Positions 26,774-61,180 of a DNA stretch of 64,000 nucleotides are shown in pieces. The notes below the pieces were generated by a model, which ran no database searches, had not been told where the DNA came from, and saw nothing but the letters and a program-made list of their open reading frames with translations. Source of the DNA: Macrostomum lignano (lineage: Eukaryota); NCBI GenBank assembly GCA_002269645.1, contig NIVC01000708.1, forward strand, positions 401,453 to 465,452. Direction: 5' to 3'. Made by a program: the position numbers and the translations under genes. Within the stretch, counting starts at the first letter, position 1, and each line of letters starts with the position of its first letter.

Positions 26774-26823
<50 letters not shown>

Positions 26824-32800: not shown

Positions 32801-34852
32801 TTCGGAAAGGACTTTAACGAAATTCGGCGCGACTATCTTTCTTGGAAATCTATGCGCTCGATAGTGGAGTACTTCTACATGTGGAAGACCACGGATAGAT
32901 ACGTGCAGCAGAAGCGCTTGAAGGCCTCGGAAGCTGAGAAGAAACTGAAGCAGGTTTGTTTGTTTACTTTTAGTTTTTTGGCATTAAAATGCTTCAATTA
33001 TTCAGTCGGCGCCAATTCTATTTATCTTTTGGCGTGAATTCTACCCAGCAAGAACCCCAATGCCCATCCCCAGGTGTACATTCCCAACTACACGAAGCCC
33101 AACTCCCATCCCCAGGTGTACATTCCCAACTACACGAAGCCCAACTCCCATCCCCAGGTGTACATTCCCAACTGCACAAAGCTTAACTCCCATCCCCAGG
33201 TGTACATTCCCAACTGCACAAAGCCAACTCCCATCCTCAGGTGTACATTCCCAACTGCACGAAGCCCAACCCCATCCCCAGGTGTACATTCCCAACTATA
33301 CGAAGCGCAACCCCATCCCCAGGTGTACATTCCCAACTATACGAAGCCCAGGTGAAAATTCCCAACTGCACGAAGCCAACCCCCCTTCTCCTGGTGTACA
33401 TTCCCAACTATACAAAGCCCAGATGAAAATTCCCAACTGCACGAAGCCAACCCCCTTTCTCCAGGTGTACATTCCCAACTATACGAAGCCCAGATGTAAA
33501 TTCCCAACTGCACGAAGCCCAACCCCATCCCCAGGTGTACATTCCCAACTATACGAAGCCCAGATGTAAATTCCCAACTGCACGAAGCCCAACCCCATCC
33601 CCAGGTGTACATTCCCAACTATACGAAGCCAAATCCCGGCGTGCTGTACAATCGGCCGGAGCTGCCGGGCTCCAGCCGCTGCTGCGAGAGCTGCTCAGGT
33701 ACTGCCACCTCCAACGGTCAGTGGTTCGCCTGGGGCCCCCCGCACCTGTCCTGCCGCCTGTGCTCATCCTGCTGGAACTATTGGAAACGGTACGGCGGAT
33801 TGAAGAATCCAACACGAGCGGAGAAGTCGCCCAGCCCGGCCCCGTCAGCTGCTAGCGGCGCCGGCAGCTCCGGCCGGGTGTTCCGCTGCCCGGTGGTGGA
33901 CTGCGACAAAGAGTTCCGCCTGCGGCCGCAGCTGGTGCGGCACGCGGCATCGGCGCACGGCCTTGACGAGGCCAGCCTGCAGAGCATGCAGGCGGGCAAG
34001 GTGAAGGCGGTGAAGAGCATGCTGATGCGGGCCAATGCCACCGCCCAGCTGGCCAGTCTGCTCTGCTCCGACCTGCTGCGCGTTCGCCGACTCGCCCGCC
34101 GCCCGTTCAACGCGGCCTTCGACGCCAAGCCGGCGCTGCTGGATCTGCCGAAGCGCTGCCAGGCCGACGGTCGGGGTGTTCAACAGCTGCTCGACGCGGC
34201 GGCCGCCAGGCGGGCCGAGCTGAGACGGCGCCGATGCAGCCGGCTGCCGCCTGGGCAGCTCGATGCCCGACTGCGCATCGCCTGTCCCTCGTTGGACACG
34301 GACGCGAAGCCGGACATCCTGCTCGAGCCCAGGTCGAGAGCCGCCGGGGAGGACGCGGCAACAAAGCACCGCGCGTTTGCTCCGGTCAGCTCGGCTCAGC
34401 TGGCCGAGTTCTTTCTGCAGCTGGACGAGCGCAGGGCCGCCGCCGCCGCAGCCCCGTCACCGGCTGCTCCGGCCGCCAACGGCAACTCGCTGATGCCTTC
34501 AGCGGCAACCGCCCGCAAGCGCAGCCAGCCGGAGCCGCAGCAGAACTGCGGCTTCTCGTCCGCCGCCAAAGTGCAGCGCCTGGACGCCAACGGCAACGGA
34601 AACGGCGAGGCCAGGCCGGTGAAGCTCGACTCGGCCGGAGCTGCAGCCGCCGCCGCCGAGGAGATTCTGCTGTTCGATACGAAGCGATTCCGGGCGCATC
34701 TGACCGGCGCCCAGCTGAAGCGGGCCGGCCGCCGGCCGTTCAAACTGCTGCCGGGCGCCAAGAAGCCGCCGCAGCCGGTCATCGGCGAGGAGCCACCCGT
34801 AGCGCGAGCCGCCCACGCTAACAGCAACGGCATCGCCGTGAAGTCTGCCTGA
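24734..34852 (+). CDS. MTA1: Metastasis-associated protein MTA (NuRD subunit: BAH-ELM2-SANT-GATA ZnF plus C2H2 finger), 760 aa; exons 24734-24761, 29759-29920, 30840-31378, 32648-32953, 33605-34852
   Basis: MAANMYRVG|[52 protein letters not shown]...[18 protein letters not shown]|VYIPNY and CESC...[17 protein letters not shown]. The exons sum to 2283 nt, in frame. Confidence 0.97.
26261..29373 (+). mobile_element. HINE/DINE-like element, copy 2, in MTA intron 1, interrupted by a hAT-type insertion
   Basis: Starts ACAAGCTGTTGAAACCTGCGG and ends ACAGACAGACAGACAGAG...TATATGTAGAGAT; homologous end to end with 5719-8345. Confidence 0.7.
27625..28565. mobile_element. Non-autonomous hAT-superfamily element, 941 bp, with an internal duplicated left end
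   Basis: 12-bp TIR TAGGGATTCCAA / TTGGAATCCCTA; 8-bp TSD GGGGAGGG at 27617-27624 and 28566-28573; subterminal ATCCCGGGAT motifs; absent from the homologous site in copy 1 (near 7555). Confidence 0.9.
30427..30712. repeat. 21-23-bp minisatellite (GTGAGACTGGCAAATAGACAG variants) in MTA intron 2
   Basis: About 13 tandem units. Confidence 0.93.
31520..32520. repeat. Degenerate ~41-bp GGGATT-based array in MTA intron 3
   Basis: GGGATTAGGATTCGGAACCTGGGATTCGGGATCTGAGATTT units and sub-units. Confidence 0.93.
33063..33604 (+). repeat. Tandem array of the MTA intron4/exon5 junction (29-42-bp units)
   Basis: Unit CCCATCCCCAG|GTGTACATTCCCAACTACACGAAGCCCAACT. CAG|GTGTAC occurs at 33074, 33116, 33158, 33200, 33241, 33282, 33323, 33465, 33535 and 33605. 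Confidence 0.97.
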
Positions 34853-35337: not shown

Positions 35338-35892
35338 GCTCAACTCACCAATTATGATTACTAGTATAGCGCGGTCGTGTTTCGCAATTCGCCTGTGACC
35401 GGCAGTAACTTGGTGTCGGCTTAATATGTTTGTGACATTCTGCTTTTTTAAATAATAGAAACAGCGTCCGTTGTCTCAGTAGAATCGTTTTCAAACACTT
35501 CGCCCAATGAACTTGGCTATAAACAATACAAAATGTGTGAATGAATTTTGCATTTGTCTTCTGTTTCGCTTCATCTGCGTGTTTCCTGCGTTTGCCCCCG
35601 CTTACTGAATGTATCTCTGCGATGTTCTACTAATAGTAATAATAATGCAATTTTATCCTTGTCGTTTTAACATCCTTATGGCCTCGTAATCCAAGTTAAT
35701 TGCTACGAGTACCACCTGATCCGCTGCAAATAATTAATTCAAATTATCACTTGATCCTGTCCTGAGTGTTGTGTCTCAATAAACAGTTTGCTGTGAGCGC
35801 ACAGGCTTTGCGCTTGCTTTTAAACGTTTTAACAAAAATTGTCTCTGTGAGTAAAAACTGATTGACTTTCTACTTGTATTTCATTCTTCTCA

Positions 35893-37160
35893 GCAACAGC
35901 ATCATGCCTTTCAGCTACAGCATAATGTCACTTCAGCTACAGCATCATGCATTTCAGCTACAGCATCATGTCACTTCAGCTACAGCCTCATGTATTTCAG
36001 CTATAGCCTCATGTATTTCAGCTACAGCATCATGTATTTCAGCTGCAGCATCATGTCACTTCAGCTACAGCATCATGCATTTCAGCTACAGCATCATGTC
36101 ACTTCAGCTACAGCCTCATGTATTTCAGCTATAGCATCATGTCATTTCAGCAACAGCATCATGTATTTCAGCAACAGAATCATGTATTTCAGCAACAGCA
36201 TCATGTTTTTCAGCTACAGCCTACAGCATCATGTATTTCAGCTACAGCATCATGTATTTCAGCTACAGCATCATGTATTTCAGCTGCAGCATCATGTCAC
36301 TTCAGCTACAGCATCATGTATTTCAGCTACAGCATCATGTCACTTCAGCTACAGCATCATGTCACTTCAGCTACAGCATCATGTCATTTCAGCTACAGCA
36401 TCATGTATTTTAGCTGCAGCATCATGTATTTCAGCTGCAGCATCATGTATTTCAGCTGCAGCATCATGTATTTCAGCTGCAGCATCATGTATTTCAGCTA
36501 CAGCATCATGTATTTCAGCTGCAGCTTCATGTCATTTCAGCTACAGCATCATGTATTTCAGCTGCAGCTTCATGTCATTTCAGCTACAGCATCATGTATT
36601 TCAGCAGCAGCATCATGTCATTTCAGCTACAGCATCATGTATTTCAGCTACAGCATCATGTATTTCAGCAGCAGCATCATGTCATTTCAGCTACAGCATC
36701 ATGTATTTCAGCTACAGCATCATGTATTTCAGCTGCAGCATCATGTACTTCAGCTGCAGCATCATGTATTTCAGCTACAGCATCATGTATTTCAGCTACA
36801 GCATCATGTATTTCAGCTGCAGCATCATGTCATTTCAGCTACAGCATCGTGCATTTCAGCTACAGCATCATGTCTTTTTCGCTACAGCATCATGTCACTT
36901 CAGCTACAGCATGTATTTCAGCAACAGCATCATGTCATTTTAGTTAAAGCATCATGCATTTCAGCTGCAGTATCTCATCTTTTCAGCTATAGCATCATGT
37001 ATTTCAGATGCAGCATCATGTCATTTCAGCTACAGCATCATGTCATTTCAGCTATAGCATCATGTCATTTCTGCTACAGCATTATGCATTTCAGCTAAAG
37101 CATCATGTCATTTCAGCTACAGCATCATTTCATTTCAGCTACAGCATCATGTCATTTCAG
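35893..37160. repeat. 21/22-bp minisatellite (TTCAGCTACAGCATCATGTAT / ...GTCAT)
   Basis: Dozens of tandem units over about 1.27 kb. Confidence 0.95.
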
Positions 37161-40100
37161 ACAGCACATTTAACTATTGTAGAAATCTATTTTGCATTTC
37201 CGACCGCGTAAAAAGATATAAACATTTTAAGCGAGTTTCTAAAACCTGTAATTTAGAGTTTTGAAAAACTGGACGATTAACAGGTCAGTTTATTATTGAT
37301 GGAAACAGCTTGGCTTGCTTAAGGATATGAATCATGATACAATTCGCAAAAAGGTCGTAGGATGATTACTTGTAAGTAATTATTCAACTACTCAATACTA
37401 TATAAAGACTACTACAAATGGTTAGAGCCACTCGAATAGGGCTAAAGGGTGGAAGTCAGCCACAGATACTAAAATAACTAGATGCGGCCATTCAGGCCTA
37501 CAATACTTAGTAAAACAGATTTCTTTTAGATTAGCCTTGTCTTCAACAACCAACGCCCTTGTTTAACTTACTACTGAACTGGCAGTAGCTTGAACGCAAA
37601 TGTGCTGAGTAGCTTTTCCAGTATCTGTGGTCTGACCTGAATTCCGAATTTAAAATAATGCAATTACGAGCCACATGCAACAAACTCTGAAAAAGACATA
37701 CGGATGCTTGCGAGAATGCGAGATATTATTACATTATCAATAGCAGAACTTCCCACTGGAAAGTGGTAGATTTTTAGATTGAAACAGACTTAAAAAATGA
37801 CCTATTTTAATAGCATTTTTTGACATTATTTAACGACTTTACACACTTCAGATTTTAACAGGAAAAAAGTCAAAAAGTTACAATTAGCTAGGTAGAACTA
37901 GGGCTAGTCGGATGATGAAAAAATTCAATTATTAGACACGCCAGGAAATTAGCTGATTAGGCAGGCGATTGGATTAGGTGACCAGGTGATTAGGCAGCAG
38001 GTTCAACAGAGATTCCAGCCTTCCCAAATGCAGTCCCTACTGAAACCGGATGGCGAACACCGAGTCGTAGTCGGCACCATTGACGGCACTCAGGTTCAGG
38101 TGGTTCTGCGGCTTGTCGCACACCATCGTTCTCCCAAGTAGGACGTCGCAGAGCAGAAGCGACATTGTTCCGGACTCGCGACAGTACTGAATACTCTTCG
38201 TGGTGTCCGTGGCAAAGTAGATCCCTGCACCGTACATTCCACTTGAGCCCACCTTGAATCCTTCTTTGATGATGAGCTCGGCGATTGCGTTTCTAGTTCC
38301 ATGGAAGAACAGCTCTGGAACGGCGTCCTTCTTGACCAGCTCGCTGCTCACATCCAGAAGACGTCGGTCTAGAGCTGGGTTCTCAATCTTCTCGATGCTC
38401 AGAATTGCTCTCACCGTGACTGAGTGCTCACTCTTGATGTACCGCATCACCCGATCGTGCACCTTGAAGTATTCGACTGCCGTGTTCTCGTCGGTCTCCG
38501 TCAGCATTATTCGCTTGACTTCGCTTCCATGAGCTGACTGCAGCTGGCGAAGCCTCATCTGCTTATCCAGACCCCAACAGGCAGAGCAAGACTGACCTTC
38601 AAGCAGTCTGGCAAGAGCGCAGCAAGCAACTGTCTCTTCGTGACCGCACTGAAACTTCTTGGTCACATCGGTGAGACATTCTTCAGAAAGCTCCCAGCAC
38701 TGACACTCATGTCGACAGAGTTCCCTAAATGCCTTCTCCGGACATGGAGGACAGGGCGAGGTTGAGCACGCAGACTGGCATTTGTGTCCACACGGCAGCG
38801 TCTTCTCGCATGGTCTCTTACACGCAGCCAGCGACGCTGTGGAAGATTGGCTGCATGGAGTTCTGAGCGCGTGATCACACGAGAGCTTCACAGTCCTAAT
38901 TCGGTCACAATGAGTTTGATTCTTCCCACACGGACTCCCAAATTGCTCTTTGCATGTGAGGCACCGTTTGGAAACATTCACGATGCACAGCTGAGGAGAG
39001 CAAGTCTCGAAACACTTCTGTGTGCATTGGTGGCCACACGGCAGCTTCTTGGAGCACGTTTCTGTGCACTTTACGATTTCGTATTTCAGTTTCTTCCACT
39101 CAAAGCACAGCATTTGCTTCACGTGTCCACACGGCAGAGTCTTTGCAACAGATTCTTGGCATGTTCCAAACGGCTGGTTGCACAGCTTGGATTGGACGTG
39201 GCCGCAGCTCAGCTGAGCTTCGATATTCTGGGTGCAGTGCTTCGAATCACATCTTTCTGAGCACTTGAGCGGACAAGGATGACCACAACTCAGCATGCGA
39301 ATGCACTTTTCTTCGCATTTCAAGTGCCTAGGGTCTGATGACAAGAAGCACTGGATTTTTGTGGTGTGTGAGCACGGCAGCTTCACAATGACCATTTTGT
39401 CGCACCGATCATGCTCATGCCAAGGCTGGCACAGCTTCGGACAGTCGTGTTCACCACATGGCATGGTTTCCACGCACTTGCTTCTGCAGAAGACTCCCTT
39501 CATTCTAGACAATTCGGCTGCACTTCTCCAGCTGTGCTCTGTTCCGTGCTTCCGGCACACCACCTGAAAGTCGGATCGCAGAACGCCGTCCTCCTCAAAA
39601 GCGGTCAGCAGCTGGCTCCACTCGGCGCACTTTCTCAGCAAAGAAGCTTTGCCGATGAAGATCAGACCGCAGTGCGACCTCGACTGCGCTACACATCGGC
39701 GGTTGAGCGACGCAAGGAATCCGGGCTTCTCGCTGCGAACCAGGGACACAAGGACAATGTCGTTCTCGTCGCCTTGGTACACATCGATGCTGTGCACTTT
39801 GATGAAGCCTTCGTTAGCCTCATCCGCAAGTGCAGCTGAACGATTTGAAACGTCTCTCTCCCAATCCTCCAAACGTGGTCGCAGTTTCCGTCGGATGAGC
39901 CGCACCTGGCCCTGATACGGAGTGAGGATGGTGAGCTGGCTTGGCTTGTACCCGAACCTCAGGAACGTCATCGCTACTTCAACGATCAGCTCTGCCTCGC
40001 CGTCGTTAACGTAGCTTCGCTCGCCTGACTCCGACATGTTCTCTACGTCCCAGAATGCAACGGCCTTCGGCATGAACGATGGAATGTCGTGACCCTTCAC

Positions 40101-43100
40101 GCTGTCTATGTTGTCCTGCAGGTCCGGATAGACGTCGAGTTTCAGGTACTTGGAAATGTCAGGTCGCATTCGGTTCTGGAACTGAAGACAGTCAAACGGA
40201 AAACCGCAGTTGATCAGTCTCTCCATCATCGAGACATCCAGGTGGCAGTGCTTCACCAGCTCATAGTTCTCGACGGTCGGCCGAAGCTGCTTGTGATCAC
40301 CGATCAGGTAGAGTCGCTCCGTCCAGTCGCCAAGACAGCCAAGAAGCATTGGCTCCATGATCTCCGCCGCTTCCTCCACAATAACTGTGTTCGGTCTGAG
40401 CTTCTTCAGCAACTCGTTATTGATTGAAGCACCCGTGATGGTCATCGCAATCACGTCGACGTCTTGACAGATCTTGACATCTCTGTTCAGGTTAGCTTCC
40501 TTGTACTCGTCTCGATGTCGTTCATACTGTCTGAACAAAAAGTTCAGTTTGGAGCTGTGTCTCGTCCAAGCTTTGTCAAAGTGGTCCAACAAGCATCCCT
40601 GCATGAACAGAAATCGGTCTTCGGGCTTGAGCTCCCACAGGTTTTGGGTGTAGCGCAACGTATGCCACTTCTCTGAGACGATTCGAATCAGTCGTTGGTC
40701 CAGTCTCACGGGCTGGGTTCTTGCTGACTCAAGTTCAGGCTGAAGGTGGTTCGACTGTCTCCTCCTGAAGCCAGAAGCCGCTCTGTCTTTATCTGTTCCT
40801 GTTCGTCGTTGAGTTCATCCTCTTCTGCCTCTTCCTCAGTCTTGTTTGTTGTGTTACTCTTTGGGGTAGCATCTTTCGTCTGTAGCGCCTGAAGCAAAGT
40901 CGGCATAAATTTATCTATCACAGGTTGCTGTGGAATCCACTGCCGCACAGCAACTCGCAGTTTATCCAACTGATTTGTGCGCCCTACCTGCGAATGTCGA
41001 TGCCTGGCAGCAGCTGATTGCTGAAGAAATTGCTTCCAGAATCTACTTTGCAAGTCTTCAGTCCAGTATACAAGCAGGAGATTCTCATTGAATACCGTGT
41101 TTTCATTGCCAAATAATGAGTTAAGGTGTTTCAACAGAGCTTCTTTGGCTTCTTCAACCAGACGCCACTGCTCCCTGGAGTCCCTGTCCTGCACGGCGTC
41201 TCTCCTGGAGCGGATGTCTAAATCTTTGGTTAGCTCAGTCTTCTTTGAACGACCACCAAAGCGAATCAAATCGATTTTCGAACTTTGCTGCGTGAGAATC
41301 TTACGAATGAACTCGTCTAAAGCGTTGTTCTTGTAGGTGACCAACAGAATGGGACCATTCCTGTGTCTTTTGGTCTCATGCGCTGTTAGGTACCTCACGA
41401 GGTGTGTACCAACGTAGGTCTTTCCACAGCCTGGTGGTCCCTGGATGACGGAGATTTTTCGCTGAGTACAGTTTCTAAACGCTTGCGTTTGCGACTCATC
41501 CAACCGACTGCAGATCTCGTCTTGAAATAATTTAATCGCACTTTTCTCACATTGAACGTATGAAAGCCTCGATCGTAGAATACCTGAGTGAGGCCATCTA
41601 GAGGTAAAAGATTCTCCCGAATAAGCCATCATATCTGACTCTGCTGGCTCATCTTCACTGTCTGATTCTTCCAGTTGTATTGAATCGAAAGTGCACGACA
41701 CCAGCTCCTTCTCCAGTGGCAGCGTCTTGCCGTTCAGAGCCTGCACGTTTGCCAGCACGTGCCGGTAAGCTTGGAAGTAGGTCGGAGACTCGGCCAACCA
41801 CAGACTCGACTTCTGAAGTCGAAGCCGTCGTAGCAGATCACACAGCTCAATGCTGCCCGATTCGAATATCGGCTCGACAAAGATCAGACCTAACTGGTTC
41901 AGCAGACCGGAGTCCCTGTTACTCACCGTCACGCAAACAAACTAACCATCTCGCAGAACGTCTTGAGTGTACTCACTTTGTCTGCTGAGTAACTTCTGCT
42001 CGCTGCTTCTGTGAACAGCTGGCGACAGGCGCCTCGATCGAGCTGGAAGTTCTTCTCGTGCATGAGATGCTGGATGCTCAGGCCGATGTCGCGCTGCTGG
42101 TATGCACTCGCTTTACTGTTGACTCGCACGAAGAACTCCAACACAGTGTACAGCGAGTCAGCACTCAGTCGAGGCCACTGACCGACGATCGACCAGCCAG
42201 GAGGAACCTCCAGCAACTGCTGAATGTCTCTGTTGCTCGTCTTGCTACTCAGCGACTCAATGAAGCTGCTGACTTGTTGGTCGCTTCGTTGGACGGGCTT
42301 CTCCAGCCGCATGTCCATTGTCGGCTTCTGGCCAGGCTTCGCCTCGCGCGGTGTGCAGGTGACCTGGTCTCCATGCTCGGGGTCCCAGCCGCTAAAGTAC
42401 AGCTTCCGAGGCAGAACTGTTTTCTTACCGGTGTCGGTCGTCACGTGGTATATTTTCGATTGGCAAGTCTTAAGTGTGTGCGTCCCAGTTATTGTGCCCT
42501 TGATAGTGGGGCTTGCAGCTGGCAGAGCTGCTACTTTCAAGTCCTGTTTTACGAGTATATGTGGCGGTTTGCTGATGTCTCTCGCTACATCTTTTGTGCC
42601 ATTTTTTCGATTCTGTACTGCAGCCTGTCGCCGAGCTTCAGGTCGAGCTGCTGGACCCAGTGGTGACCAAAAATGACTCCGTGTTTGGCTGACGGACTGT
42701 CCTCGTAGGTAACGTAGCCGCACCTGCCGGGGCTGATATGAACCACATAGCCTGGATTGAGTGCGGTGGGGAACGTAAAGTAAGTAAAGGAGAACGCTTT
42801 TAACGGCTGATCAAGCCTGGATTTGTCTAATTGGTATCGAATCTTTTTACATGCTTCCTATGGTTGGAACGTCTGGGATGGGCATAAAGTTTGGGATGGG
42901 CATGAATCGTCTGAGAAGCTCTAGACTAATTTTTGTGCATAAGCCTCAATTAAATGTGGCCACGTACAGAATCGCATTCAAACCGTTGAATGAGCTTACA
43001 GAGTTGTGATTTCGAGACACAAACTCACCAAATCGGAACTCACTGCCGTCTTGACTACTCGTAGCTGGCGCTGCAGTCGGAGGCGCATCGACAGCAGGGC

Positions 43101-43339
43101 GAGGAAACTCTGCTGAATGCGTGCAGTTAGAAATAGGATGTCAGGCAGTGCTGAGTACTGCTTTGATCAAGCTAACGACTCAACGTGTATCAGAGAACTG
43201 TTTAGAAGGAACGAAACTCTGAGATCGGACGAGAGATCATGGTAGACACTTAAAGCTAACCTGTCAACGCTGCATCTGAGAACTGCTTGTGATGAAATAA
43301 TTTCTTGATAAAAAATGAGCTTACATAAAAAAGAGAAAA

Positions 43340-43622
43340 AAATTGATTGCGCCCGCCCCAATTGGGCCAGATGTGCAACCGACAGCTCAGCCGCAGCTAT
43401 TGCGCGGCGCATCTGAAGGCTGCGTACGGCTGTTCAGTCCAAGGACTGGAGGGTGGCCACACACAGCCTCAATTACACCAGCTAATGCTGGCACCCATTT
43501 TACAGCTGGGTGAACTGCAGAAATACGGAGTTAAGTGTCTTACTCAAGGTCAAGGATACAAACTGTTCCAGTAGGATCGGGAATCGAACCCCCGACGTTT
43601 CAGTCTAACCACTATAGGCTAC
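43340..43622 (-). mobile_element. tRNA-derived SINE in intron 2 of paralog A
   Basis: Reverse strand reads GTAGCCTATAGTGGTTAG (A box) ... GGTTCGATTCCC (B box) ... CCTTGAGTAAGACACTTAAC. The 3' end is approximate. Confidence 0.6.
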
Positions 43623-44050
43623 AAACCCTTGTAAAAAAATAAAAAGAAGTCTAAGTTAACTCTTAAACAGTAAAATTGCTTTAAGGTGTCCTCAATGAGC
43701 TTAAGGCATCTCCTAATACGTACTTAGTACCTCAATAGTACGAAGTATTACTGCGGAATCTACTTAATCTACCAGTGGATTCAAACTATACGAGACCATA
43801 TTTGCTATTCTCGCTATTACTAAACTTTATACTGGCTGTTTGAGCCACGTGATTGAGTCAGCTTACCTGGAACTTCGCCACCACCCAGGTTCAATCCGTC
43901 GCTTCGCCCTCCGCCGCCTCCGCCGCGGCCTCTTCTAGCTCTTATTTTGCTTCCTCTGTGAATTTTAAATTGCTTTTGCGCGCCTGGAAAGTTAAGCAGA
44001 ATTTCAGAAGGGTTAGAAAAGCATTAGTTGTGGCTGATATTGATTATAAT

Positions 44051-44730
44051 AAGGGGCACTGCGCTCTGATTTGCCAGAGGCCCAGGCTTGATTTCAAGTG
44101 CAGTCACGTTTATTTGGAGCTGAATTGGAATCTCGACTTGGCTCTGCTCGTGCTATTAACGCCCTTGAAGGCCAACCCACCAAAGACAGAATGAAGTGTT
44201 TTATTTTTTTTATTAGAGGCAGGGGGTTGTATGCACCCTGGCGCACTTTAAGCGACATAGGCACAACAACCGGCGAGAGGCATTACTGCCCATTCCACCG
44301 ACTCCCCTGAGCAGGCACACAAGCGCGCGGATACGTACGCAGGCACACACTCACACAGGAGTGTACAGCGGCCCTGACTTTATATTATCGTTAGGCATGT
44401 ACACTTCACTGCGCCTTGGGGGGGTTGGCTCTCAAGGCCGTTAATTGCACGAGCAGAGCCAAGCCGAGATTCCAATTCAGCCCCAAATTAATGTGACTGC
44501 ACTTGGAATCGAGCCTGGGTCGCTGGCACACCAGAGCAGCTGCGCTACCGCTGGGCTACGGCCCCCCTTAGAATGAAGTGTACATGCCTAATGATAAATA
44601 AAGTTAGGGCCACTGTACACTCCTGTGTGAGTGTGTGCCTGTGCGTATGACTGCTTACGTATCCGCGCGCTTGTGTGCCTGCTCAGGGGAGTCGGCGGAA
44701 TGGGCAGCAATGCCTCTCGCCGGTTGTGCA
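44051..44730 (+). mobile_element. tRNA-derived SINE (5'-degenerate) split by an antisense copy of the same family
   Basis: 44088-44199 and 44570-44727 are reverse complements of parts of 44200-44569. Confidence 0.75.
44200..44569 (-). mobile_element. Full-length tRNA-derived SINE nested in its own family, 12-bp TSD
   Basis: Head GGGGCCGTAGCCCAGCGGTAG...GGCTCGATTCC on the minus strand; A-rich tail at 44200-44215; TSD AGAATGAAGTGT at 44188-44199 and 44570-44581. Confidence 0.85.
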
Positions 44731-45241
44731 AGGCATTATCACGCTGCTAATACTACCAACAGTATCGAGAAAATGAATCTAATGTTTTACTGCGTGCATA
44801 AAAATTGCATTCTGATAAAGTTAAACGTGTTCACTTTCGGGTGAGGTTCTTAGAAAGGTGCAACAGAGGCAAAACTGTTAAGGAGCGTTAAGGAGGCTGG
44901 CTCAAAGGAGCTTTTCTATATACATGTAGGTTTATATTTGTACTTTTATACGCTCAACGCTCGTATTTATCGTGATTGTTGAAAAAGTTCAAATAGATTC
45001 TAGGCAATAAATTGATTATAATTCAACCAAGCAACAACTGCTCACCATTGTCCTGAGCAGACGCGCAGACATAGTCAAAGCCTTCATCGAATACCTGTTG
45101 CCGAGACTGGTCACTGTGAGCCATGGTGACTCAAAAGCTCGGTACCTGCAGCCTCTCAGTGACTCGGGAAGTTTTGACCTGAGAAATTTGATTCATTTTT
45201 ATTAGAGGTCGCACAGAATAACAGGCAAATTCTACCTAGAG

Positions 45242-46215
45242 CATGCGTTTGCAAACTCTGGCCTCTGCCTCTCTCTCTCTGTCCCTCGGGTCCTTTGAAA
45301 TTTGTCTCCTTTCTTCCCTCTCCTCACTTTTCTCTTCTGTCTCCTTTCTCCCCTCTTCTCTTCTCTCTCCTCACTTTTCTCTTCTGTCTCCTTTCTCCCC
45401 TCTTCTCTTCTCTCTCCTCACTTTTCTCTTCTGTCTCCTTTCTCCCCTCTTCTCTTCTCTCTCCTCAGTTTTCTCATCTGTCTCCTTTCTCCCCTCCTCT
45501 CTTCTCTCTCTTCACTTCTGTGAAGAGAATTCACTCTTCTCTTCTGTCTTCTTTCTCCCCTCCTCTCTTCTCTCTCCTCACTCTTCTTTTCTGTCTCCTT
45601 TCTCCCTTCCTCTCCTTTCTTTTCTCATCTCATCCATCATCTTCTCTCCTCTCTCCCATCTTTTCTTGCTTCTCTCTCTCCTCGTCTCTCCTCTTTTATC
45701 TTTTCCATCATCCCATCTCTCGCCTCTACTCTGTTCTCCCATGCATCTTTAATCTTTCCAGTTCCTCTCCTTTCCACTCTCATCTTCCTTAAAATGAGAG
45801 AGGGGAGAGAGAAGTGAGGGGAGAGGAGAGAGGAGAAATGAATAATAAAGAATAGAGAAAAAAGATGGAAAGAGGATGGAAAGAGTCGAGAGAAAAGAGG
45901 AGAGATAAGATTGTAGAGATAAGAGGAAAAAAGTGAGAGGAAAGATAAGAGTGAGGAGAGAAGTTTAAAAGGCATCAAATCTTAATTTAACACGAATTTA
46001 ATTCAATTTTGTTTGAGCATGAGAAGAAAAGACCGATTAGAGAGGATAGAAAAGAAAGGAGAGAAGAGAGAGCAGAGAGGAGAGAGGACAGAAGAGATTA
46101 GAAATGAGAGAGTAGAGAGAAAAGAGGAGATATTAGAGAGAAGAGGAGAGAGGGGAGAGAGGGGAGGATTGGAATTCAGCGAGTTCGAAATCTGCGGGCT
46201 TTAACAGCGTGTAGA
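45242..46215. mobile_element. Two oppositely oriented fragments of the HINE-like CT-rich family
   Basis: 45242-45300 matches 5951-6012. A CT-rich arm runs to ~45790 and a GA-rich arm to ~46170; 46160-46215 is the reverse complement of the family 5' end. Confidence 0.6.
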
Positions 46216-46849
46216 TTATATATCACAAGCTTTTGCTTACCTTGTGTTGCAGTGATTTACCAAAATTGCAGATGCAGAATTCAATTTGAATCAGGAAAAC
46301 GAAAGTTACACTCAGCTTATCACCAAGTATCAAGTCACATATAGCTCGTATTTAAATACGCTTCGGTCTGGCAATTTAAATTGGAGTTGGAAACCCAAAA
46401 ATTTCTTGGAAATAATCGCATATTCCCCCGAATGAGTGTACATACAGCGTATGTACATTTATAGCCAAGCCATCAATGCACGCATTCGAGCTGAGGGGTT
46501 GGGGGTGCACACAAATTGACAGACCTCAGAAGGCCCTGGCCCCTGGCTCGGTAGTCGGTATGTATATTGAAAGACAAAAAATCCAAGGTCTAAAGGTAAT
46601 AGAGGTAATAGGTCTAAGGTCTAAGGTCTAAAGGTAAATGTAATAGTCTTCTTCTCTGTACTCCATGATAGTCTGCTCTCTCGGACTGTTTTCTCTGTTT
46701 TCTCTGTAAAAAAGCTTTGCGATCTTTATACGCCTTCAGAACTATTGAAAACTAGTATAAATGCGCTTAATTAGGAGTCAAGTCAGTTTGTTTTCCACCT
46801 CAACTTTTGTTTTATTTCAAGACGCTCAAGAGTACCACCAAGTTTCCTC

Positions 46850-47225
46850 TCGATGAGAGAGATTTCCTCCCTAAATTCCCCAATAGATTCCCTCCCGAAT
46901 TCCATAAGAGATTCCGTTCCGAATCCCCCAAGAGATTCCCTCCCGAGTTCTCTTAGAGATTCTCTCCTGAAATTCCCATGAGATTCCCCCACAAATTTTC
47001 CAAGAGATTCCCTCACGAATTCCCCAAGAGATTCCCTCTTGAATTCCCTAAGATATTTCCTCCTGAATTCCCCAAGATATTTCCTCCTGAATTCCCCAAG
47101 ATATTTCCTCCTGAATTCCCCAAGATATTTCCTCCTGAATTCCCCAAGATATTTCCTCCTGAATTCCCCAAGATATTCCCTCCTGAATTCCCCAAGATAT
47201 TCCCTCCTGAATTCCCCAAGATATT
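46850..47225. repeat. 24-bp minisatellite (TTTCCTCCTGAATTCCCCAAGATA)
   Basis: About 7-8 near-perfect units at 47040-47222, with degenerate units upstream. Confidence 0.92.
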
Positions 47226-48026
47226 CCATTTCCCTCCAAAAATCCTCCAGATTTTGCCTCTAAATATCCCATACAGTTTTCATTCCAAATTCCTTATGAT
47301 TGCCTTCCCAGGACAAGATCATCAGAAAATGCTTCCCAGTCCTGAGTTCTGAGTCCCAGCCCTGGACCAAACCTCAACAAGTGAAGTGAACAGAAAGAAG
47401 ATTCAGTAGCAATTAACACTCTTATAGAGTGATTGAGAGGACACAGAACACTGTGACTGAGAGCAGACTGGGCTGTTCTGCTGCTGCATTTATTACGACC
47501 TACCAGGGTAGGTAAGTACTACTCTCTCTGCTACTGCACAAGAAAGTACATATTTTCTAAAAATAGACGCATGTACACACCATGCAATGTTTTCTCAGTC
47601 CAAATGAAAGCATTGTGATAGTGTAAAAATTGGACAATGTACATTGAGAATGAATTGGATGAAAATTTCCTGGAAAGTCGACACGTCTCGCCTCAACTGG
47701 GCCTGCCGCTTCTCAAGGCTACAAAATACAAATGCTCAGACAGTCCGTTTGATATTAAGCAGCTTATTGTAGCACAGACAGACTCTGAAGACTACGAAAA
47801 AGACGGATAATTAGTGTTAAATATTTACAAAAAAAAATAAGCCAAACGGTCTTTCAGAATCGTGTAGGTTCAGTGCATAGGTAGGTGCAGCCATCGAGTT
47901 CCTTTGTGAGTTCTTTCAGTAGATTAAAGACATCCTAGTATTGCAGGATTTAAAAGTACACAAAATTTAACCAATATTGCGCCCGTACAAATAAAGGTGC
48001 TACTATTCCAGGTTCCGCAGAACAGC

Positions 48027-51000
48027 ATGAGCGAAGGTAGAGGAGCGGCAAGAGGCCGAGGCGGCTTCAGAGCCGGCTTCAGAGGCGGCTTCGGAGGTCG
48101 CGCAGGAAGAGGCGACGCTTGGCGAGGCGGTGGAAGGGGCTTCAGCAGAAGCGGAAGTTCCGGTTAGTAGCTCCAACTTCAGACTTTTGATTCCCGAATC
48201 CCGTCCTGTCTCTGTCAGAGACGCTCGTCTCTGTGCACTGGTTGTTGTCCTTAGCGATGATGCTTTTCCTGCTTAACTTTCAGCGGACATCTCCAACATG
48301 CCAGCATCTTCAACTAGGGACACCAATGAAGCTGCGAGTGCGGATCAAGAAAGCAGTGAATTTCGATTTGGTGAGCTGATTTGTAGGGCTTGCTTAGAGA
48401 CAGTTTTCTATATTAAATACAAGCTCGAATCTAGGGTCAACAGCTTTCATGGGGTTGAGTTGCAGACATGTACATGTAGATGCACAGCCTTTGAATTCAC
48501 CTGGCTGTTTCTGTTGGTAACAAATGTGTAACTCGCTACCGGCTGAAACGGTGTCTCCTGACTCCTCCTCTGAGCCGACATTGATTTTCATGCGCGTGAT
48601 GTCTGTAGATATGACTAGGTGATTCCAAAAGTTGCGCCTTATTTTAATTTGTTACAAGTTGTGTCTCCAAGAATAGTTACCGTTGTAACGGTAACTTCTA
48701 GTGGTCCTTGTGTGCCTCATTTTCGATTTCTTTAAGAATCCTTAATCTACTATCCACTGAAGTGTGCTTGCATTGTGTGCTGCTATCCACTGAAGTGTGC
48801 TTGCATTGTGTGCTACTATCCACTGAAGTGTGCTTGCATTGTGTGCTACTATCCACTGAAGTGTGCTTGCATTTTGTGCTACTATCCACTGAAGTGTGCT
48901 TGCATTGTGTGCTGCTATCCACTAAAGTGTGCTTGCATTGTGTGCTACTATCCACTGAAGTGTGCTTGCATTGTATGCTACTATCCACTGAAGTGTGCTT
49001 GCATTGTATGCTACTATCCACTGAAGTTGATGTGGATCAAGCTGAGAAATGAATGAAACTTTTTGAAATGAAGTTACTCAGATAAGTAGAAAAAACTAAT
49101 GTTATGTGCGGGAAACTGAACAGGCAGGTTGCTTCTCATCAGAGGGAAGGGAAGATGGCATATCAGTCTACTTTTAGTACTCCATGAGAAACTTTTAAAC
49201 ACCTTTCGCCCAACTCAGACATTAGAAATCAACAGTGCCTCTTTTGCCACCTGCCTCTCTAGGTTACGTCAGCAGCATCACACTGGGCAAGCACGGATTT
49301 GTATCGTTTGAGGACAACCCGTCAGCCCGCCACGGGGTCATCTTCTGGTACTACTGGGTTCAGCAGCTCAACCTGCAGGTTGGAGACAGGCTGCGGTACC
49401 GAATCGAGCACAAAGGAAACAAAACATCTGCGGTCGACATCAGCCGGGCTCCATTGGGCAGCTCGCGACCTGAAGCCTCAGCCCAAGTAGCTGACTTGCC
49501 TTCAAACACTTCACAAGAAGCGGCTCAACTGCAGGCACAAAAGCAACAAGTGGCTACACAACTAATGGTTCGTCCGATCATCGCAGGAACTATTACAAAC
49601 AGCCACGTGCTTGACGATAGGCCATTGAAAATATACCACGTGACGACCGACACCGGTAAGAAAACAGTTCTACCTCGGAAGCTGTACTTCAGCGGCTGGG
49701 ACCCCGAGCATGGAGATCAGGTCACCTGCACACCGCGCGAGGCGAAGCCTGGCCAGAAGCCGACAATGGACATGCGGCTGGAGAAGCCCGTCCAACGAAG
49801 CGATCAACAAGTCAGCAGCTTCATTGAGTCGCTGAGTAGCAAGACGAGTAACAGAGACATTCAGCAGTTACTGGAGGTTCCTCCTGGCTGGTCGATCGTC
49901 GGTCAGTGGCCTCGACTGAGTGCTGACTCGCTGTACACTGTGTTGGAGTTCTTTGTGCGAGTCAACAGTAGAGCGAGTGCATACCAGCAGCGCGACATCG
50001 GCCTGAGCATCCAGCATCTCATGCACGAGAAGAACTTCCAGCTCGATCGAGGCGCCTGTCGCCAGCTGTTCACGGAAGCAGCGAGCAGAAGTTACTCAGC
50101 AGACAAATTGAGCACGCTCAAGACGTTCTGCGAGATGGTTGGTCAGCTGGTTCCAGACAGATGCTACCTCATCATGCAGCTGTGCCAGCAGTTCTACGAC
50201 ACTCACTTTTCTGGCAAAGATGCTTTCGAGCTGGCCAAGCTGATGTGCCGGAGGTTCCTGCCAGTGAGAAACTCCGACCTGAGCTGGCACGAGCTATCAG
50301 CCACCTTGAGTAAGGAGGAGGTGTTGAGCTCGACCGACATGGGAGAGACGATCCGGCTGCTTCCGCCAGTGCGAACTCATGCTCCGTACGACTCGGTGGC
50401 CGATTATCTCGAGACGAACCTGAAGCTGCTGCGTGCGGACTGCTTCGAGAAGCTGAGATCCGGCATCCGGCAGTTCATTGGCGGCAAGTTGAATCGCCGA
50501 GACATGACAGTCTACCATCAAGTCGAGCTCAGAGGCATCGATATTACTCACAAAGAGTTGTCCTTAGTGCTCAAGATCAGGCCGTTCAACAGAGTAGTGA
50601 AGGACTGGGAGAAGTCTCCGTTGCTGATGTTCGGAAATTTGCTCTGCTTGTCGTTTGACGAAACTTTCACAGAGTTTGTTTGCGTGACGGTGAGTAACAG
50701 GGACTCCGGTCTGCTGAACCAGTTCGGTCTGATCTTTGTCGAGCCGATATTCGAATCGGGCAGCATCGAGCTGTGTGATCTGCTGCGACGGCTCCGACTT
50801 CAGAAGTCGAGTCTGTGGTTGGCCGAGTCTCCGACCTACTTCCAAGCTTACCGGCACGTGCTGGCAAACGTGCAGGCTCTGAACGGCAAGACGCTGCCAC
50901 TGGAGAAGGAGCTGGTGTCGTGCACTTTCGATTCAATACAAGTGGAAGAATCAGACAGTGAAGATGAGCCAGCAGAGTCAGATGTGCTGGCTTATTCGCG

Positions 51001-54000
51001 AGACTCTTTAACCTCTAGATGGCCTCACTCAGGTATTCTACGATCGAGGCTTTCATCTGCTCAACGTGATAAATGCGATATTAAATCATTTAAAGACGAG
51101 ATCTGCAGTCAGTTGGATGAGTCGCAAACGCAAGCGTTTAGAAACTGTACTCAGCGAAGAATCTCCGTCATCCAGGGACCACCAGGCTGTGGAAAGACCT
51201 ACGTTGGTACACACCTCGTGAGGTACCTAACAGCGCATGAGACCAAGAGACACAGGAATGGCCCCGTTCTGTTGGTCACCTACAAGAACAACGCTTTAGA
51301 CGAGTTCATTCGTAAGATTCTCACGCAGCAAAGTTCGAAAATCGATTTGATTCGCTTTGGTGGTCGTTCAAAGAAGACTGAGCTAACCAAAGATTTAGAC
51401 ATCCGCTCCAGGAGAGACGCCGTGCAGGACAGGGACTCCAGGGAGCAGTGGCGTCTGGTTGAAGAAGCGAAGGAAGCTCTGTTGGAACACCTAGAAAATG
51501 TTTGTCTTCAGGAAAAAATAGTTTTTGATGAGCTTTTCCTGTCCAAATTTTGGAGTGAAGAGAACCAAAACCGATTCTGCAAACAATTTCTTTATCACCC
51601 GGCCGGAATCAAATATCGAACCCAACTCGCAGGACTGCCTAATCTTATCGATAGGCTGAGGTTTGCTGTGCGGCAGTGGATTCCGCCACAGTATGTAATT
51701 GATAAGTTCATGCCGAATCTGCTTCAGACATTGCAGACAGGCTCTTGCACTGCGAGCAGCGACACAACAAATAAGACTGAGGAAGAGGCAGAAGAGGATG
51801 AACTCAACGACGAACAGGAACAGATAAAGACAGAGCGGCTTCTGGCTTCAGGAGGAGACAGTCGAACCACCTTCAGCCTGAACTTGAGTCAGCAAGAACC
51901 CAGCCCCGTGAGACTGGACCAACGACTGATTCGAATCGTCTCAGAGAAGTGGCATACGTTGCGCTACACCCAAAACCTGTGGGAACTCAGGCCCGAAGAC
52001 CGATTCCTGTTCATGCAGGGATGCTTGTTGGACCACTTTGACAAAGCTTGGACGAGACACAGCTCCAAACTGAACTTTTTGTTCAGACAGTATGAACGAC
52101 ATCGAGACGAGTACAAGGAAGCTAACCTGAACAGAGATGTCAAGATCTGTCAAGACGTCGACGTAATTGCGATGACCATCACGGGTGCTTCAATCAATAA
52201 CGAGTTGCTGAAGAGGCTCAGACCGAACACAGTTATTGTGGAGGAAGCGGCGGAGATCATGGAGCCAATGCTTCTTGGATGTCTTGGCGACTGGACGGAG
52301 CGACTCTTCCTGATCGGTGATCACAAGCAGCTTCGGCCGACCGTCGAGAACTATGAGCTGGTGAAGCACTGCCACCTGGACGTGTCGATGATGGAAAGAC
52401 TGATCAACTGCGGTTTTCCGTTTGACTGTCTTCAGTTCCAGAACCGAATGCGACCTGACATTTCCAAGTACCTGAAACTCGACGTCTATCCGGACCTGCA
52501 GGACAATATAGACAGCGTGAAGGGTCACGACATTCCATCGTTCATGCCGAAGGCCGTTGCATTCTGGGACGTAGAGAACATGTCGGAGTCAGGCGAGCGA
52601 AGCTACGTTAACAACGGCGAGGCAGAGTTGATCGTTGAAGTAGCGATGACGTTCCTGAGGTTCGGGTACAAGCCAAGCCAGCTCACCATCCTCACTCCGT
52701 ATCAGGGCCAGGTGCGGCTCATACGACGGGAACTGCGACCACGTTTGGAGGATTGGGAGAGAGACGTTTCAAATCGTTCAGCACTCGCGAGTGAGGCTAA
52801 AGAAGGCTTCATCAAAGTGCACAGCATCGATGTGTACCAAGGCGACGAGAACGACATTGTCCTTGTGTCGCTGGTTCGCAGCGAGAAGCCCGGATTTCTC
52901 GCATCGCTCAACCGCCGATGCGTTGCACAATCGCGGTCGCGCTGCGGTCTGATCTTCATCGGCAAAGCTTCTTTGCTGAGAAAGTGCGCCGAGTGGAGCC
53001 AGTTGCTGACCGCTTTTGAGGAGGACGGCGTTCTGCGATCCGACTTTCCGGTGGTGTGCCGGAAGCACGGAACAGAGCACAGCTGGAGAAGTGCAGCCGA
53101 ATTGTCTAGAATGAAGGGAGTCTTCTGCAGAAGCAAGTGCGTGGAACCATGCCATGTGGTGAACACGTCTGTCCGAAGCTGTGCCAGCCTTGGCATGAGC
53201 ATGATCGGTGCGACAAAATGGTCATTGTGAAGTTGCCGTGCTCACACACCACAAAAATCCAGTGCTTCTTGTCGTCAGACCCTAGGCAGCTTAAATGCGA
53301 AGAAAAGTGCATTCGCATGCTGAGTTGTGGTCATCCTTGTCCGCTCAAGTGCTCAGAAAGATGTGATTCGAAGCACTGCACCCAGAATGTTGAAGCTCAG
53401 CTGAGCTGCGGCCACGTCCAATCCAAGCTGTGCAACCAGCCGATTAAACCATGCCAAGAATCTGTTGCAAAGACTCTGCCGTGTGGACACGTGAAGCAAA
53501 TGCTGTGCTTTGAGTGGAAGAAACTGAAATACGAAATCGTAAAGTGCACAGAAACGTGCTCCAAGAAGCTGCCGTGTGGCCACCAATGCACACAGAAGTG
53601 TTTCGAGACTTGCTCTCCTCAGCTGTGCATCGTGAATGTTTCCAAACGGTGCCTCACATGCAAAGAGCAATTTGGGAGTCCGTGTGGGAAGAATCAAACT
53701 CATTGTGACCGAATTAGGACTGTGAAGCTCTCGTGTGGTCACGCGCTCAGAACTCCATGCAGCCAATCTTCCACAGCGTCGCTGGCTGCGTGTAAGAGAC
53801 CATGCGAGAAGACGCTGCCGTGTGGACACAAATGCCAGTCTGTGTGCTCAACCTCACCCTGTCCTCCATGTCCGAAGAAGGCATTTAGGGAACTCTGTCG
53901 ACATGAGTGTCAGTGCTGGGAGCTTTCTGAAGAATGTCTCACCGATGTGACCAAGAAGTTCCAGTGCGGTCACGAAGAGACAGTTGCTTGCTGCGCTCTT

Positions 54001-54659
54001 GCCAGACTGCTTGAAGGTCAGTCTTGCTCTGCCTGTTGGGTCTGGATAAGCAGATGAGGCTTCGCCAGCTGCAGTCAGCTCATGGAAGCGAAGTCAAGCG
54101 AATAATGCTGACGGAGACCGACGAGAACACGGCAGTCGAATACTTCAAGGTGCACGATCGGGTGATGAGGTACATCAAGAGTGAGCACTCAGTCACGGTG
54201 AGAGCAATTCTGAGCATCGAGAAGATTGAGAACCCAGCTCTAGACCGACGTCTTCTGGATGTGAGCAGCCAGCTGGTCAAGAAGGACGCCGTTCCAGAGC
54301 TGTTCTTTCATGGAACTAGAAACGCAATCGCCGAGCTCATCATCAAAGAAGGATTCAAGGTGGGCTCACGTGGAATGTACGGTGCAGGGATCTACTTTGC
54401 CACGGACACCACGAAGAGTATTCAGTACTGTTGCGAGTCCGGAACAATGTCGCTTCTGCTCTGCGACGTCCTACTTGGGAGAACGATGGTGTGCGACAAG
54501 CCGCAGAACCACCTGAACCTGAGTGCCGTCAATGGTGCCGACTACGACTCGGTGTTCGCCAGACGGAACACGAAGGGCACAGGAGGAGTGCTGAACGATG
54601 AGTACATTGTGTACCGTCCGGAGCAGGCGGCGCCGAGGTACCTCATCCGGTTTCAGTAG
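48027..54659 (+). CDS. ZNFX1: ZNFX1-like SF1 RNA helicase with N-terminal RGG and cold-shock/OB-like domains, NF-X1 zinc-finger array and C-terminal PARP catalytic domain (paralog B, ~1873 aa once two 1-bp frameshifts are corrected); exons 48027-48162, 48284-48370, 49263-54659
   Basis: DYLETNLKLLRADC (ZNFX1 stalk), GPPGCGKT, VIVEEAAE, GDHKQLRP, QNRMRPDI, ILTPYQGQV, DVYQGDEND, LNRRCVAQSR; repeated LPCGHxCxxxC fingers; FFHGT / GMYGAGIYFA / NDEYIVY. The frameshifts at 53145-53146 (AA) and 54038-54040 (GGG) are AAA and GGGG in paralog A. Confidence 0.92.
48745..49025. repeat. 33-bp minisatellite in intron 2 of paralog B
   Basis: CTATCCACTGAAGTGTGCTTGCATTGTGTGCTA, about 8.5 copies. Confidence 0.95.
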
Positions 54660-56032: not shown

Positions 56033-56745
56033 GCCGAAAAATGGCTTATTATTCCTACTGTTAAAGACTCTTCAGAATTTCCTGCAGAATGGTCAATCTT
56101 TGATATTTTAGTCAAGATCTTTGTTTTTGGCTTGCTTTTGAGACACATTTTACGAGTATTTTCCAGGACTATTAAATTTTTATTTTATCGTAAATCATTT
56201 ATTCAGCATTAAATTAATATTTATAATTAACTAATTACCAGTAATAAACTTAAAATTGTTATTTCAGGTACACATTGTTCTTTCTATTTAATATTTAAAT
56301 ATATAAATATTACAATAATCAAATCTTATTTTAATTACCTCTGTGAATTATTTTTTTCTTTAAAAGCAACCTTCCTGCTGTTTAAAGATTTTTGTTGGCC
56401 AGTTATGCGAGGCAAGCAGATAGATGATTGATTTTGGTTTAATTTGTCTGTTTGCAGAAGGCTTTGAGCACTTGCGGGTCACAGCTGACGCGGCCCCCAG
56501 CCAGCCAGCAATTGAATTGGATCAAGCAAGCAGTTACAGTACAGTTTATCATTTTTGCTGCATGGTCTCCGAGCAGCCACACAGACGCATTAGTACATGT
56601 ACAGTACGCGGGTGCATTAAATGTATGTTCTCATATTCAGGCTACTCGATCGTACATGTACATGTATATGTGTATTTATACATCTCTGGGCCAAGTGCTA
56701 CTAAAAAGTAGAAGGACGCAACACTCGAAATCCATGGAAAATGTT

Positions 56746-56918
56746 TGTAGTAACTGAGTCAGAGGCCGTGTTTGCTGTGTAGCCAAACTCTTACAAATCT
56801 CGCCGCGCTGGGCACGCGTCTATATATTATGGAGTTAGAATTGGGGTGGCGGCACCCACCCCACTCCGCAGCCAATCAGACTGCCCGGGCGTACCATACT
56901 GTGCGTACGCACACTACA
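56746..56918 (-). repeat. 3' LTR
   Basis: Matches 61181-61353. Confidence 0.97.
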
Positions 56919-57120
56919 TCTCTCCCCTTTCGAATAGAGACTGAGAGAGAAGAAAATCGATTTAAACGTAACTCGAAAATACAAAGTTCGAAAGATTCAC
57001 CGATGATGCGCATTGAAAATGGAGATTAAAATATTGAGGAAATAAAATATTTGAATTGAATGCAGCAAAAACGTAAAAAAACTTCAGTCCGCATATTACG
57101 GAAAAGAAAGTCAGTTAATT

Positions 57121-61148: not shown

Positions 61149-61180
61149 GATTTTTAAAGGTTCAGTTCTTGCGACGCCAT

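Follow-up and report, generated by a model that had tools for sequence, protein, structure and literature searches.

Two related genes lie head to head in the window, the 64,000-nucleotide stretch analysed here from contig NIVC01000708.1 of the Macrostomum lignano assembly Mlig_3_7 (GCA_002269645.1). The two divergent copies, designated A (minus strand) and B (plus strand), are both of a type that joins a cold-shock-like domain (CSD), a ZNFX1-type helicase of superfamily 1 (SF1), predicted NFX1-type zinc fingers and a poly(ADP-ribose) polymerase (PARP) domain. We consider it probable that they are an old, divergent pair of paralogs kept alike by gene conversion, and that copy A of the window is a degenerating redundant copy and not a maintained dead partner of B. 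The sequence of events proposed is that the pair, transcribed divergently, would be older than the recent genome duplication; that conversion within the locus, between the inverted copies, would homogenise most of the main exon and leave the old divergence in two islands; and that copy A would recently have lost segments of 532 bp and 84 bp. Copy B would be a gene of the intact type, and its two homopolymer deletions would be errors of the long-read consensus or else lesions of very recent origin.

The inverted-repeat arms of the pair (A, minus strand, 38046-42464; B, plus strand, 49621-54566) share 95-97% identity. A gapped alignment extends a weaker similarity of 70-85% out to A 42713 and B 49301, and at the opposite end the similarity of the arms ceases about 30 nt beyond the stop codons of both A and B. 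The same layout was found on a second contig, NIVC01000666.1 (loci L002 and L007), which aligns collinearly with the window, with an identity of 91-98%, and has the same head-to-head pair and spacer, as well as the MTA-like and myosin-side neighbours. The copies on this homeologous contig are referred to as A' (product P0008) and B'. An earlier note made from the letters of this DNA had described two copies of the main exon facing away from each other, and this description is borne out both by the alignment of the arms and by the second contig. As NIVC01000666.1 has the same arrangement, the inverted pair is taken to be real and older than the split of the homeologs. The spacer between the start codons (45125-48026, 2.9 kb, without strand) contains CT-rich, AG-rich and 24-mer tandem arrays; that of the homeolog is about 1 kb longer, giving a range of 2.9-3.9 kb with variable tandem repeats. 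An Rfam scan of the window from 36 to 57 kb, the spacer included, gave zero matches.

Most of the main exon is 95-99% identical between A and B, and two stretches of it have not been homogenised by conversion. The first, a 5' divergence island, lies in the CSD-like N-terminal region (B 49263-49620, plus strand; A 42465-42751). The second lies in the 1C insertion of the helicase, just upstream of the acidic stretch (B 51493-51748, plus strand; A 40868-41123), and sits between the Walker A and the EEAA Walker B motifs. In these islands (main-exon codons 0-120 and 720-840) the synonymous divergence (dS) between A and B is ~1-2 and the nonsynonymous divergence (dN) ~0.3, with a dN/dS of ~0.3, and outside the two islands dS is 0.0-0.16. 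Between A and A', by comparison, the islands are nearly identical (dS 0.00-0.02). No usable alignment was obtained between A and B for the introns, the upstream exons or the 3' flanks. Judged by these sequence comparisons, A and B appear to be ancient paralogs, and the pair would predate the recent genome duplication of the species because the homeologous contig has the same arrangement.

Conversion has left a mosaic outside the islands. The biallelic sites there group A+B against A'+B' at 26 positions, A+A' against B+B' at 24 and A+B' against A'+B at 12, and a 42-bp insert is common to A' and B' only. From this insert and the locus-wise groupings of sites it follows that conversion between the inverted copies went on after the homeologs had split. 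The second island may have been shielded by selection or merely missed by conversion; the corresponding 1C insertion of human ZNFX1 has a regulatory role and bears an acidic plug helix. The locus illustrates cleanly how gene conversion can go on between inverted paralogs after polyploidisation, and the site patterns allow the conversion to be quantified.

Two other accounts of the pair were weighed against these data. The 95-99% identity of most of the exon would suit a recent duplication in which the islands are fast-evolving, diversifying segments. This is very improbable, as the islands are saturated at synonymous sites between A and B (dS ~1-3) at a dN/dS of ~0.3 and yet hardly differ between A and A', so that they are not fast-evolving, and as neither the introns nor the upstream exons nor the 3' flanks align between the two copies. 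The other account is an assembly artefact, in which the pair would stem from a palindromic chimeric read or from the inverted joining of two haplotypes or homeologs. It draws some support from the 36% of Mlig_3_7 by length that lies in subgenome-chimeric scaffolds (PMC10733133). Nevertheless it is scarcely credible for this locus: the inversion, spacer and neighbours all recur on an independent contig of the assembly, 7 kb of unique sequence separates the arms, and islands with a dS of at least 1 between the arms exclude alleles or homeologs of one gene. The joining of two haplotypes, which the earlier note had named as a finding that would overturn its claim, was set aside since the second contig shows the same arrangement.

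The gene model of B consists of three exons on the plus strand, with canonical splice sites: exon 1 (48027-48162), which holds the ATG and is RGG-rich; exon 2 (48284-48370); and a main exon of 5397 nt (49263-54659), encoding a CSD-like region, the ZNFX1 domain, the SF1 helicase, four predicted NFX1-type fingers and a PARP domain with the H-Y-E triad. The ATG at 48027 and the three exons agree with independent M. lignano models, the N-terminus being identical to that of P0127 and close to that of P0001, and the protein ends in DSVFARRNTKGTGGVLNDEYIVYRPEQAAPRYLIRFQ followed by the stop codon. Copy A fits a model of four exons on the minus strand. Putative exon 1 (45046-45124) contains the predicted start, ATG 45124; its splice phase fits, its sequence is identical in homeolog L002, and a start of A at this ATG is plausible. 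Exon 2 (43867-43983) is RGG-rich and homologous to exon 1 of B, without an ATG; exon 3 (43029-43112) is homologous to exon 2 of B, and both of these end in SEFRFG followed by a GT donor. The main exon of A, 4715 nt long (38037-42751), encodes the CSD-like region, the helicase, four predicted fingers of the NFX1 type and a PARP domain that is truncated. The earlier note had reported clean splice sites on the four exons of A; GT/AG sites and consistent phases were indeed found.

Domains were called using Pfam, a PDB sequence search and a predicted structure. The order of modules in each paralog is an N-terminus with RGG and cold-shock-like regions, the ZNFX1 domain, the SF1 helicase, four predicted NFX1-type zinc fingers and a C-terminal PARP domain. 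In B the UPF1-like SF1 helicase core was matched by AAA_11 (5.5e-30) and AAA_12 (1.7e-32), and the ZNFX1 domain, PF25396 (3.5e-13), was located upstream of the helicase at residues 422-507 of the open reading frame (ORF) named 49235. Both A and B possess the Walker A motif GPPGCGKT and a Walker B motif, VIVEEAAE, of the deviant EEAA form. The NFX1-type Cys/His pattern has four matches per copy but no Pfam zf-NF-X1 match at E < 0.01. The RZ-finger PF20173 was not matched by Pfam, the C-terminus being occupied by the PARP domain.

Copy A differs from all the other copies in having lost two large segments. In a four-way alignment of A, A', B and B', the 532-bp and 84-bp deletions are confined to copy A of the window. 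Both deletions had been reported in the earlier note and proved exact. The larger, a frameshift with its junction between 41943 and 41944 on the minus strand, removes the equivalent of B 50141-50672 (plus strand), a segment that encodes B1 residues 303-479 and is present in B, A' and B' and not in A. With it about two-thirds of the ZNFX1 domain match, counted from its start, is lost, and Pfam finds no ZNFX1 match in A. The smaller, in-frame deletion has its junction between 38045 and 38046 (minus strand), with a 2-nt CA microhomology, and corresponds to B 54562-54645 (plus strand), encoding RRNTKGTGGVLNDEYIVYRPEQAAPRYL, again present in B, A' and B' and not in A. It takes 28 amino acids of the PARP fold, the catalytic Glu included, and leaves the H and Y of the triad, so that the protein of A ends in DSVFAIRFQ before the stop. 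Both segments are also retained by a third A-type gene model, P0130 (UniProt A0A1I8JMK6, 3641 aa). This model from an older assembly is a chimera of retroelement Gag-Pol, some translated antisense sequence and an A-type helicase-PARP copy, and was usable only as a witness to a third A-type copy with both segments.

Two single-base deletions were also found in A by alignment of the copies (minus strand), one of A7 to A6 at 42606-42607 and one of C4 to C3 at 40712-40713. As assembled, A translated from ATG 45124 stops after 148 aa by way of the deletion at 42606. Copy A has the marks of an unprocessed pseudogene, in that four exons with GT/AG sites are kept together with the private 532-bp frameshift and the 84-bp loss, and it has probably lost its function. 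The other A-type copy has lesions of its own: in A' a GAG codon of the acidic linker (L002 9782-9784) has become the nonsense codon TAG, a change private to this copy, and a run of C4 is shortened to C3 at L002 7690. Damage to the A lineage has thus arisen independently in both homeologs. As a separate matter, the 532-bp segment reads G followed by GTCAGC...CACAG, so that the 531 nt after the initial G form an in-frame GT...AG unit, which could be due to chance or could be the trace of a deletion by way of a cryptically spliced intermediate. A mini-intron at the 532-bp junction was considered as a rescue of the frame of A and rejected; a 31-nt GT..AG unit is present there, and, as worked out by hand, it does not restore the frame.

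The loss in the PARP domain was what had led the earlier note to suggest an enzyme paired with a pseudo-enzyme. In B, PF00644 was matched at 1.7e-22 over profile positions 3-197 of 199, and in A over positions 3-122 only. The predicted structure of the B PARP domain has a pLDDT of 88.9, and its nearest fold is the catalytic domain of tankyrase (TM 0.70-0.75). The Glu of the motif NDEYIVY aligns with the catalytic Glu of tankyrase-2, and both A and B possess the triad's H and Y. The 28 residues absent from A correspond to positions 180-207 of the B PARP model, which are predicted to span the whole of strand 193-196, where the Glu is located, and to take in six residues of the nine that make up the final strand, 202-210. 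On this model the PARP domain of A would be structurally truncated and not neatly inactivated. The complete H-Y-E triad occurs in B, A' and B' and is conserved across the family, 27 of 30 aligned members having the Glu. A loss such as that of the 28 residues was seen in none of the 30 family members in which the region is aligned.

On that suggestion A would be a maintained, catalytically dead partner of B, the two being co-regulated from a shared bidirectional promoter in the manner of sensor/helper immune genes or of ZAP. In its favour, the head-to-head layout is conserved in two homeologs, both lineages would seem from the islands to have been long kept open under purifying selection (dN/dS ~0.3 at dS ~1), the two conversion-resistant islands could mark functional specialisation, and the splice sites of A are clean. 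However, the loss of the Glu strand occurs in one homeolog copy only and is shared neither by A' and P0130 nor by the aligned relatives, the same copy has a frame-shifting deletion of 532 bp, and two core strands are hit, in contrast to the inactive PARP domains that are known, in which the fold is complete. The spacer, moreover, consists of 2.9-3.9 kb of variable tandem repeats and is not a compact bidirectional promoter, and the three other M. lignano family members checked are solitary within 10 kb or to the end of the contig. A pseudo-enzyme is recognised by an inactivating change conserved among orthologues in a fold that is retained; here A' and P0130 keep the segment, and strands of the fold are lost. 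Paired sensor/helper immune genes have in common a conserved divergent arrangement, which is present on NIVC01000666.1, and partners that are intact, co-expressed and interacting. As to intactness, A has the 532-bp frameshift, A' a nonsense codon, and B is broken in frame as assembled. We consequently regard an enzyme and pseudo-enzyme pair as highly unlikely. The other suggestion of the earlier note, a decaying duplicate, is supported for copy A by the private frameshift and the PARP loss, one amendment being needed: the duplication is old, and the copies have been homogenised by conversion.

The note had also claimed that B keeps the catalytic Glu. Its codon is present, but the reading frame of B is broken in the assembly, a point that had been missed. 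Alignment of the copies revealed a single-base deletion of AAA to AA at 53144-53145 and a second, of GGGG to GGG, at 54037-54038 (both plus strand). Through these two losses, at 53145 and 54038, the zinc fingers and the PARP domain fall into two frames other than that of the helicase, and the product of B as assembled is 1396 aa long, with an out-of-frame stop at 53230 and neither fingers nor PARP. B' by comparison reads without a break as one ORF of 1812 codons, through the H-Y-E PARP domain and up to the stop, with full-length homopolymers at both of the B frameshift sites.

All five single-base lesions found in A, A' and B are deletions in homopolymers of 3-7 nt; no two copies have one in common, and B' is free of them. 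Neither window copy shows an in-frame stop when its frame is followed. Mlig_3_7 was assembled with Canu from PacBio continuous long reads (CLR) and polished with Pilon only (PMC5730564). The M. lignano genome contains three homeologous subgenomes that differ by ~2% single-nucleotide polymorphisms and many indels, and 93% of read pairs map to several places in it (PMC10733133). The single-base lesions fit long-read consensus errors left in a region present in four to six copies, which resists short-read polishing, and they fit very young slippage mutations in redundant copies as well. For the two sites in B, consensus error is somewhat the better supposition. Other genes were considered as a yardstick for such lesions and dropped, annotated intact genes being pre-selected for intactness. 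The MTA-like neighbour is 745 aa in both homeologs, and the exons of P0002 and P0018, of 3.9-5 kb, are intact.

Substitutions were then compared among the four copies. The dN/dS is 0.19 for B against B' and 0.26 for A against A'. Private changes, given as synonymous/nonsynonymous, number 26.5/14.5 in B, 28/16 in B', 5/7 in A and 10/12 in A', from which B appears to be as constrained as the intact B'. The large deletions of A would be recent, because the substitutions in A show no clear relaxation, and decay is not demonstrable by the substitution data alone.

A number of points weigh against the reading preferred here. The 12 private changes of A do not differ significantly from neutrality or from constraint, and the relaxation of the A lineage compared with the B lineage is a trend only (Fisher p = 0.06). 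That the losses of 532 bp and 84 bp are real and not assembly errors is argued from their size and from the cleanness of the junctions, not from reads. The splice sites of copy A are clean, and GenBank annotates a coding sequence (CDS) of 855 aa in it, so some transcript model exists. Finally, the source annotation of the contig records no gene for B, which is ambiguous and would fit B being dead as well.

This last point leads to a possibility that we take seriously while thinking it the less probable, namely that both copies in the window homeolog are dead, this subgenome copy being lost after polyploidisation with the function resting on the intact B'. Each damaged copy does have its own private lesions, among them a true nonsense substitution in A' and the large deletions in A. 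Along with the absence of a recorded gene for B, a private long terminal repeat (LTR) retroelement lies 2.1 kb downstream of B in the window homeolog, the subgenomes of M. lignano differ chiefly by indels (PMC10733133), and the ratio of indels to substitutions between A and A', 6 to ~79, is near neutral. Set against this, the private substitutions of B are as constrained as those of B', the five single-base lesions look like residual PacBio-CLR consensus error, and neither copy has in-frame stops when the frame is followed. As it was originally posed, the finding matters little, being that of a redundant copy decaying after a recent genome duplication in a hard-to-polish assembly and not of a designed pair.

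The GenBank models misdescribe both genes. Copy A is annotated only as the 855-aa CDS, from ATG 40604 to the stop at 38037, which is a fragment. The B' product P0131 (BOX15_Mlig021124g1, 1555 aa, L007 13664-19102) is truncated, lacking the PARP domain and running out of frame after CFEWKK. The frame break of P0131 coincides with the 42-bp tandem insert common to A' and B', although the genomic exon is intact, and looks like a small intron mis-called in a transcript-based annotation. This product was not returned by homology searches with the B helicase ORF or the B N-terminus and was found through the cluster listing of P0127.

The LTR retroelement downstream of B occupies 56745-61353 on the minus strand, with a gag zinc knuckle (60195-60872), RNase H (58224-59666) and integrase (57121-58236). 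The LTR segments at 56745-56918 and at 61180-61353 match each other at 100% identity, and the element is not in the homeologous contig, where the empty site lies at L007 ~21193-21199. Because the LTRs are identical and the homeolog site is empty, the insertion is very recent and private to the window homeolog.

On the other side of the pair, an MTA-like gene with BAH, ELM2 and MTA_R1 domains (30809-34852, plus strand) is annotated as 745 aa in both homeologs, and its span holds GGGATT-type and 42/70-bp arrays (31519-32525, 33052-33630). Between this gene and copy A lies a 21/43/64-bp minisatellite (35881-37160, ~60 copies of the 21-mer), which occurs with another length in the homeolog (L002 ~13580-15240). 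Farther away are an ORF ending in a FERM N-terminal domain (12415-14202, plus strand) and the N-terminus of a Rad21/Rec8-like gene (2219-2779, minus strand). A tandem array at 17011-18225 consists of 46.7 copies of a 26-bp unit with 100% matches, and three overlapping ORFs of ~400 aa within it are repeat artefacts. Two stretches of skewed composition, 6001-8000 and 26001-28000 (GC skew -0.47 and -0.34; AT skew -0.41 and -0.27), contain a repeat family common to both and to M. lignano contig L001 (3776-3964).

The more interesting lead is the helicase-PARP family itself, which could interest researchers of RNA sensing and of ADP-ribosylation in innate immunity. A search with the 890-aa frame of copy A, comprising the C-terminal half of the helicase, the fingers and the PARP domain, returned 543 relatives, cnidarians and an annelid included, and most of the 120 of these that were listed carry both helicase and PARP domains. 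Going by their sequences, the family appears to consist of ZNFX1-type helicases in which the E3 ligase is replaced by an H-Y-E PARP domain and the N-terminus is often cold-shock-like, and to be widespread in invertebrates. In the searchable literature a ZNFX1-PARP fusion was nowhere described, and the locus tag was not mentioned. A contig from an ENA metagenome (L006), among the closest relatives outside the M. lignano records, has no inverted partner. By analogy with human ZNFX1, the intact protein may couple ADP-ribosylation to RNA. A bolder proposal, which we hold to be doubtful, is that proteins with the order CSD, ZNFX1 helicase, zinc finger and PARP are a widespread invertebrate class of RNA-activated ADP-ribosyl-transferases. 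The Macrostomum pair would then have been kept as two specialised sensors, with selection shielding an RNA-binding N-terminus and a regulatory 1C insertion from conversion and copy A as a post-polyploidy casualty of one of them.

Among known systems, human ZNFX1 (as well as fish ZNFX1 and C. elegans ZNFX-1) resembles the Macrostomum copies in the PF25396 domain, the UPF1-like SF1 helicase with AAA_11 and AAA_12, the EEAA Walker B, which has been described for human ZNFX1, the long 1C insertion with an acidic stretch, and the predicted run of NFX1-type fingers after the helicase. The ends of the proteins differ. The N-terminus of ZNFX1 is an armadillo domain, whereas the Macrostomum copies have RGG and cold-shock-like regions, and the Miz-like/RZ-finger E3 ubiquitin ligase of ZNFX1 is replaced by an H-Y-E PARP domain. 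Compared with vertebrate ZNFX1, the identity amounts to 37% across one quarter of the protein. The Macrostomum genes are best described as ZNFX1-like with a swapped effector, and not as strict ZNFX1 orthologues, because there is no PF20173 match and a PARP domain is at the C-terminus. The catalytic domains of tankyrase-1/2 and PARP4 are the best matches of solved structure in both sequence and fold, with H, Y and E aligned. The identity is only ~25%, however, the Macrostomum proteins lack the ankyrin/SAM or vault-protein modules, and ADP-ribosylation by them is predicted.

ZAP (PARP13) is an RNA-binding antiviral protein whose PARP-like domain lacks the catalytic Glu. It retains a complete PARP fold in which triad residues are substituted, and this state is conserved among its orthologues. 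The PARP-like domain of ZAP (PDB 4x52) is a weak sequence match to the Macrostomum PARP domain. Copy A, unlike ZAP, is without 28 residues that form two strands, and the loss is not common to its homeolog. The paired NLR genes of plants (RGA4/RGA5 and RRS1/RPS4) are similar in being divergent, related and possibly immune-type genes, the arrangement of the Macrostomum pair being conserved between two homeologs. In contrast to them, the Macrostomum pair has no integrated decoy, has been homogenised by conversion, and has one partner broken in frame. The palindromes of the human Y chromosome also resemble the locus, with arm-to-arm conversion, arms that are ~95-99% identical, diverged flanks and mosaic site patterns. 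The Macrostomum tracts differ from these in being confined to the coding exon of ancient paralogs, where they leave two unconverted islands.

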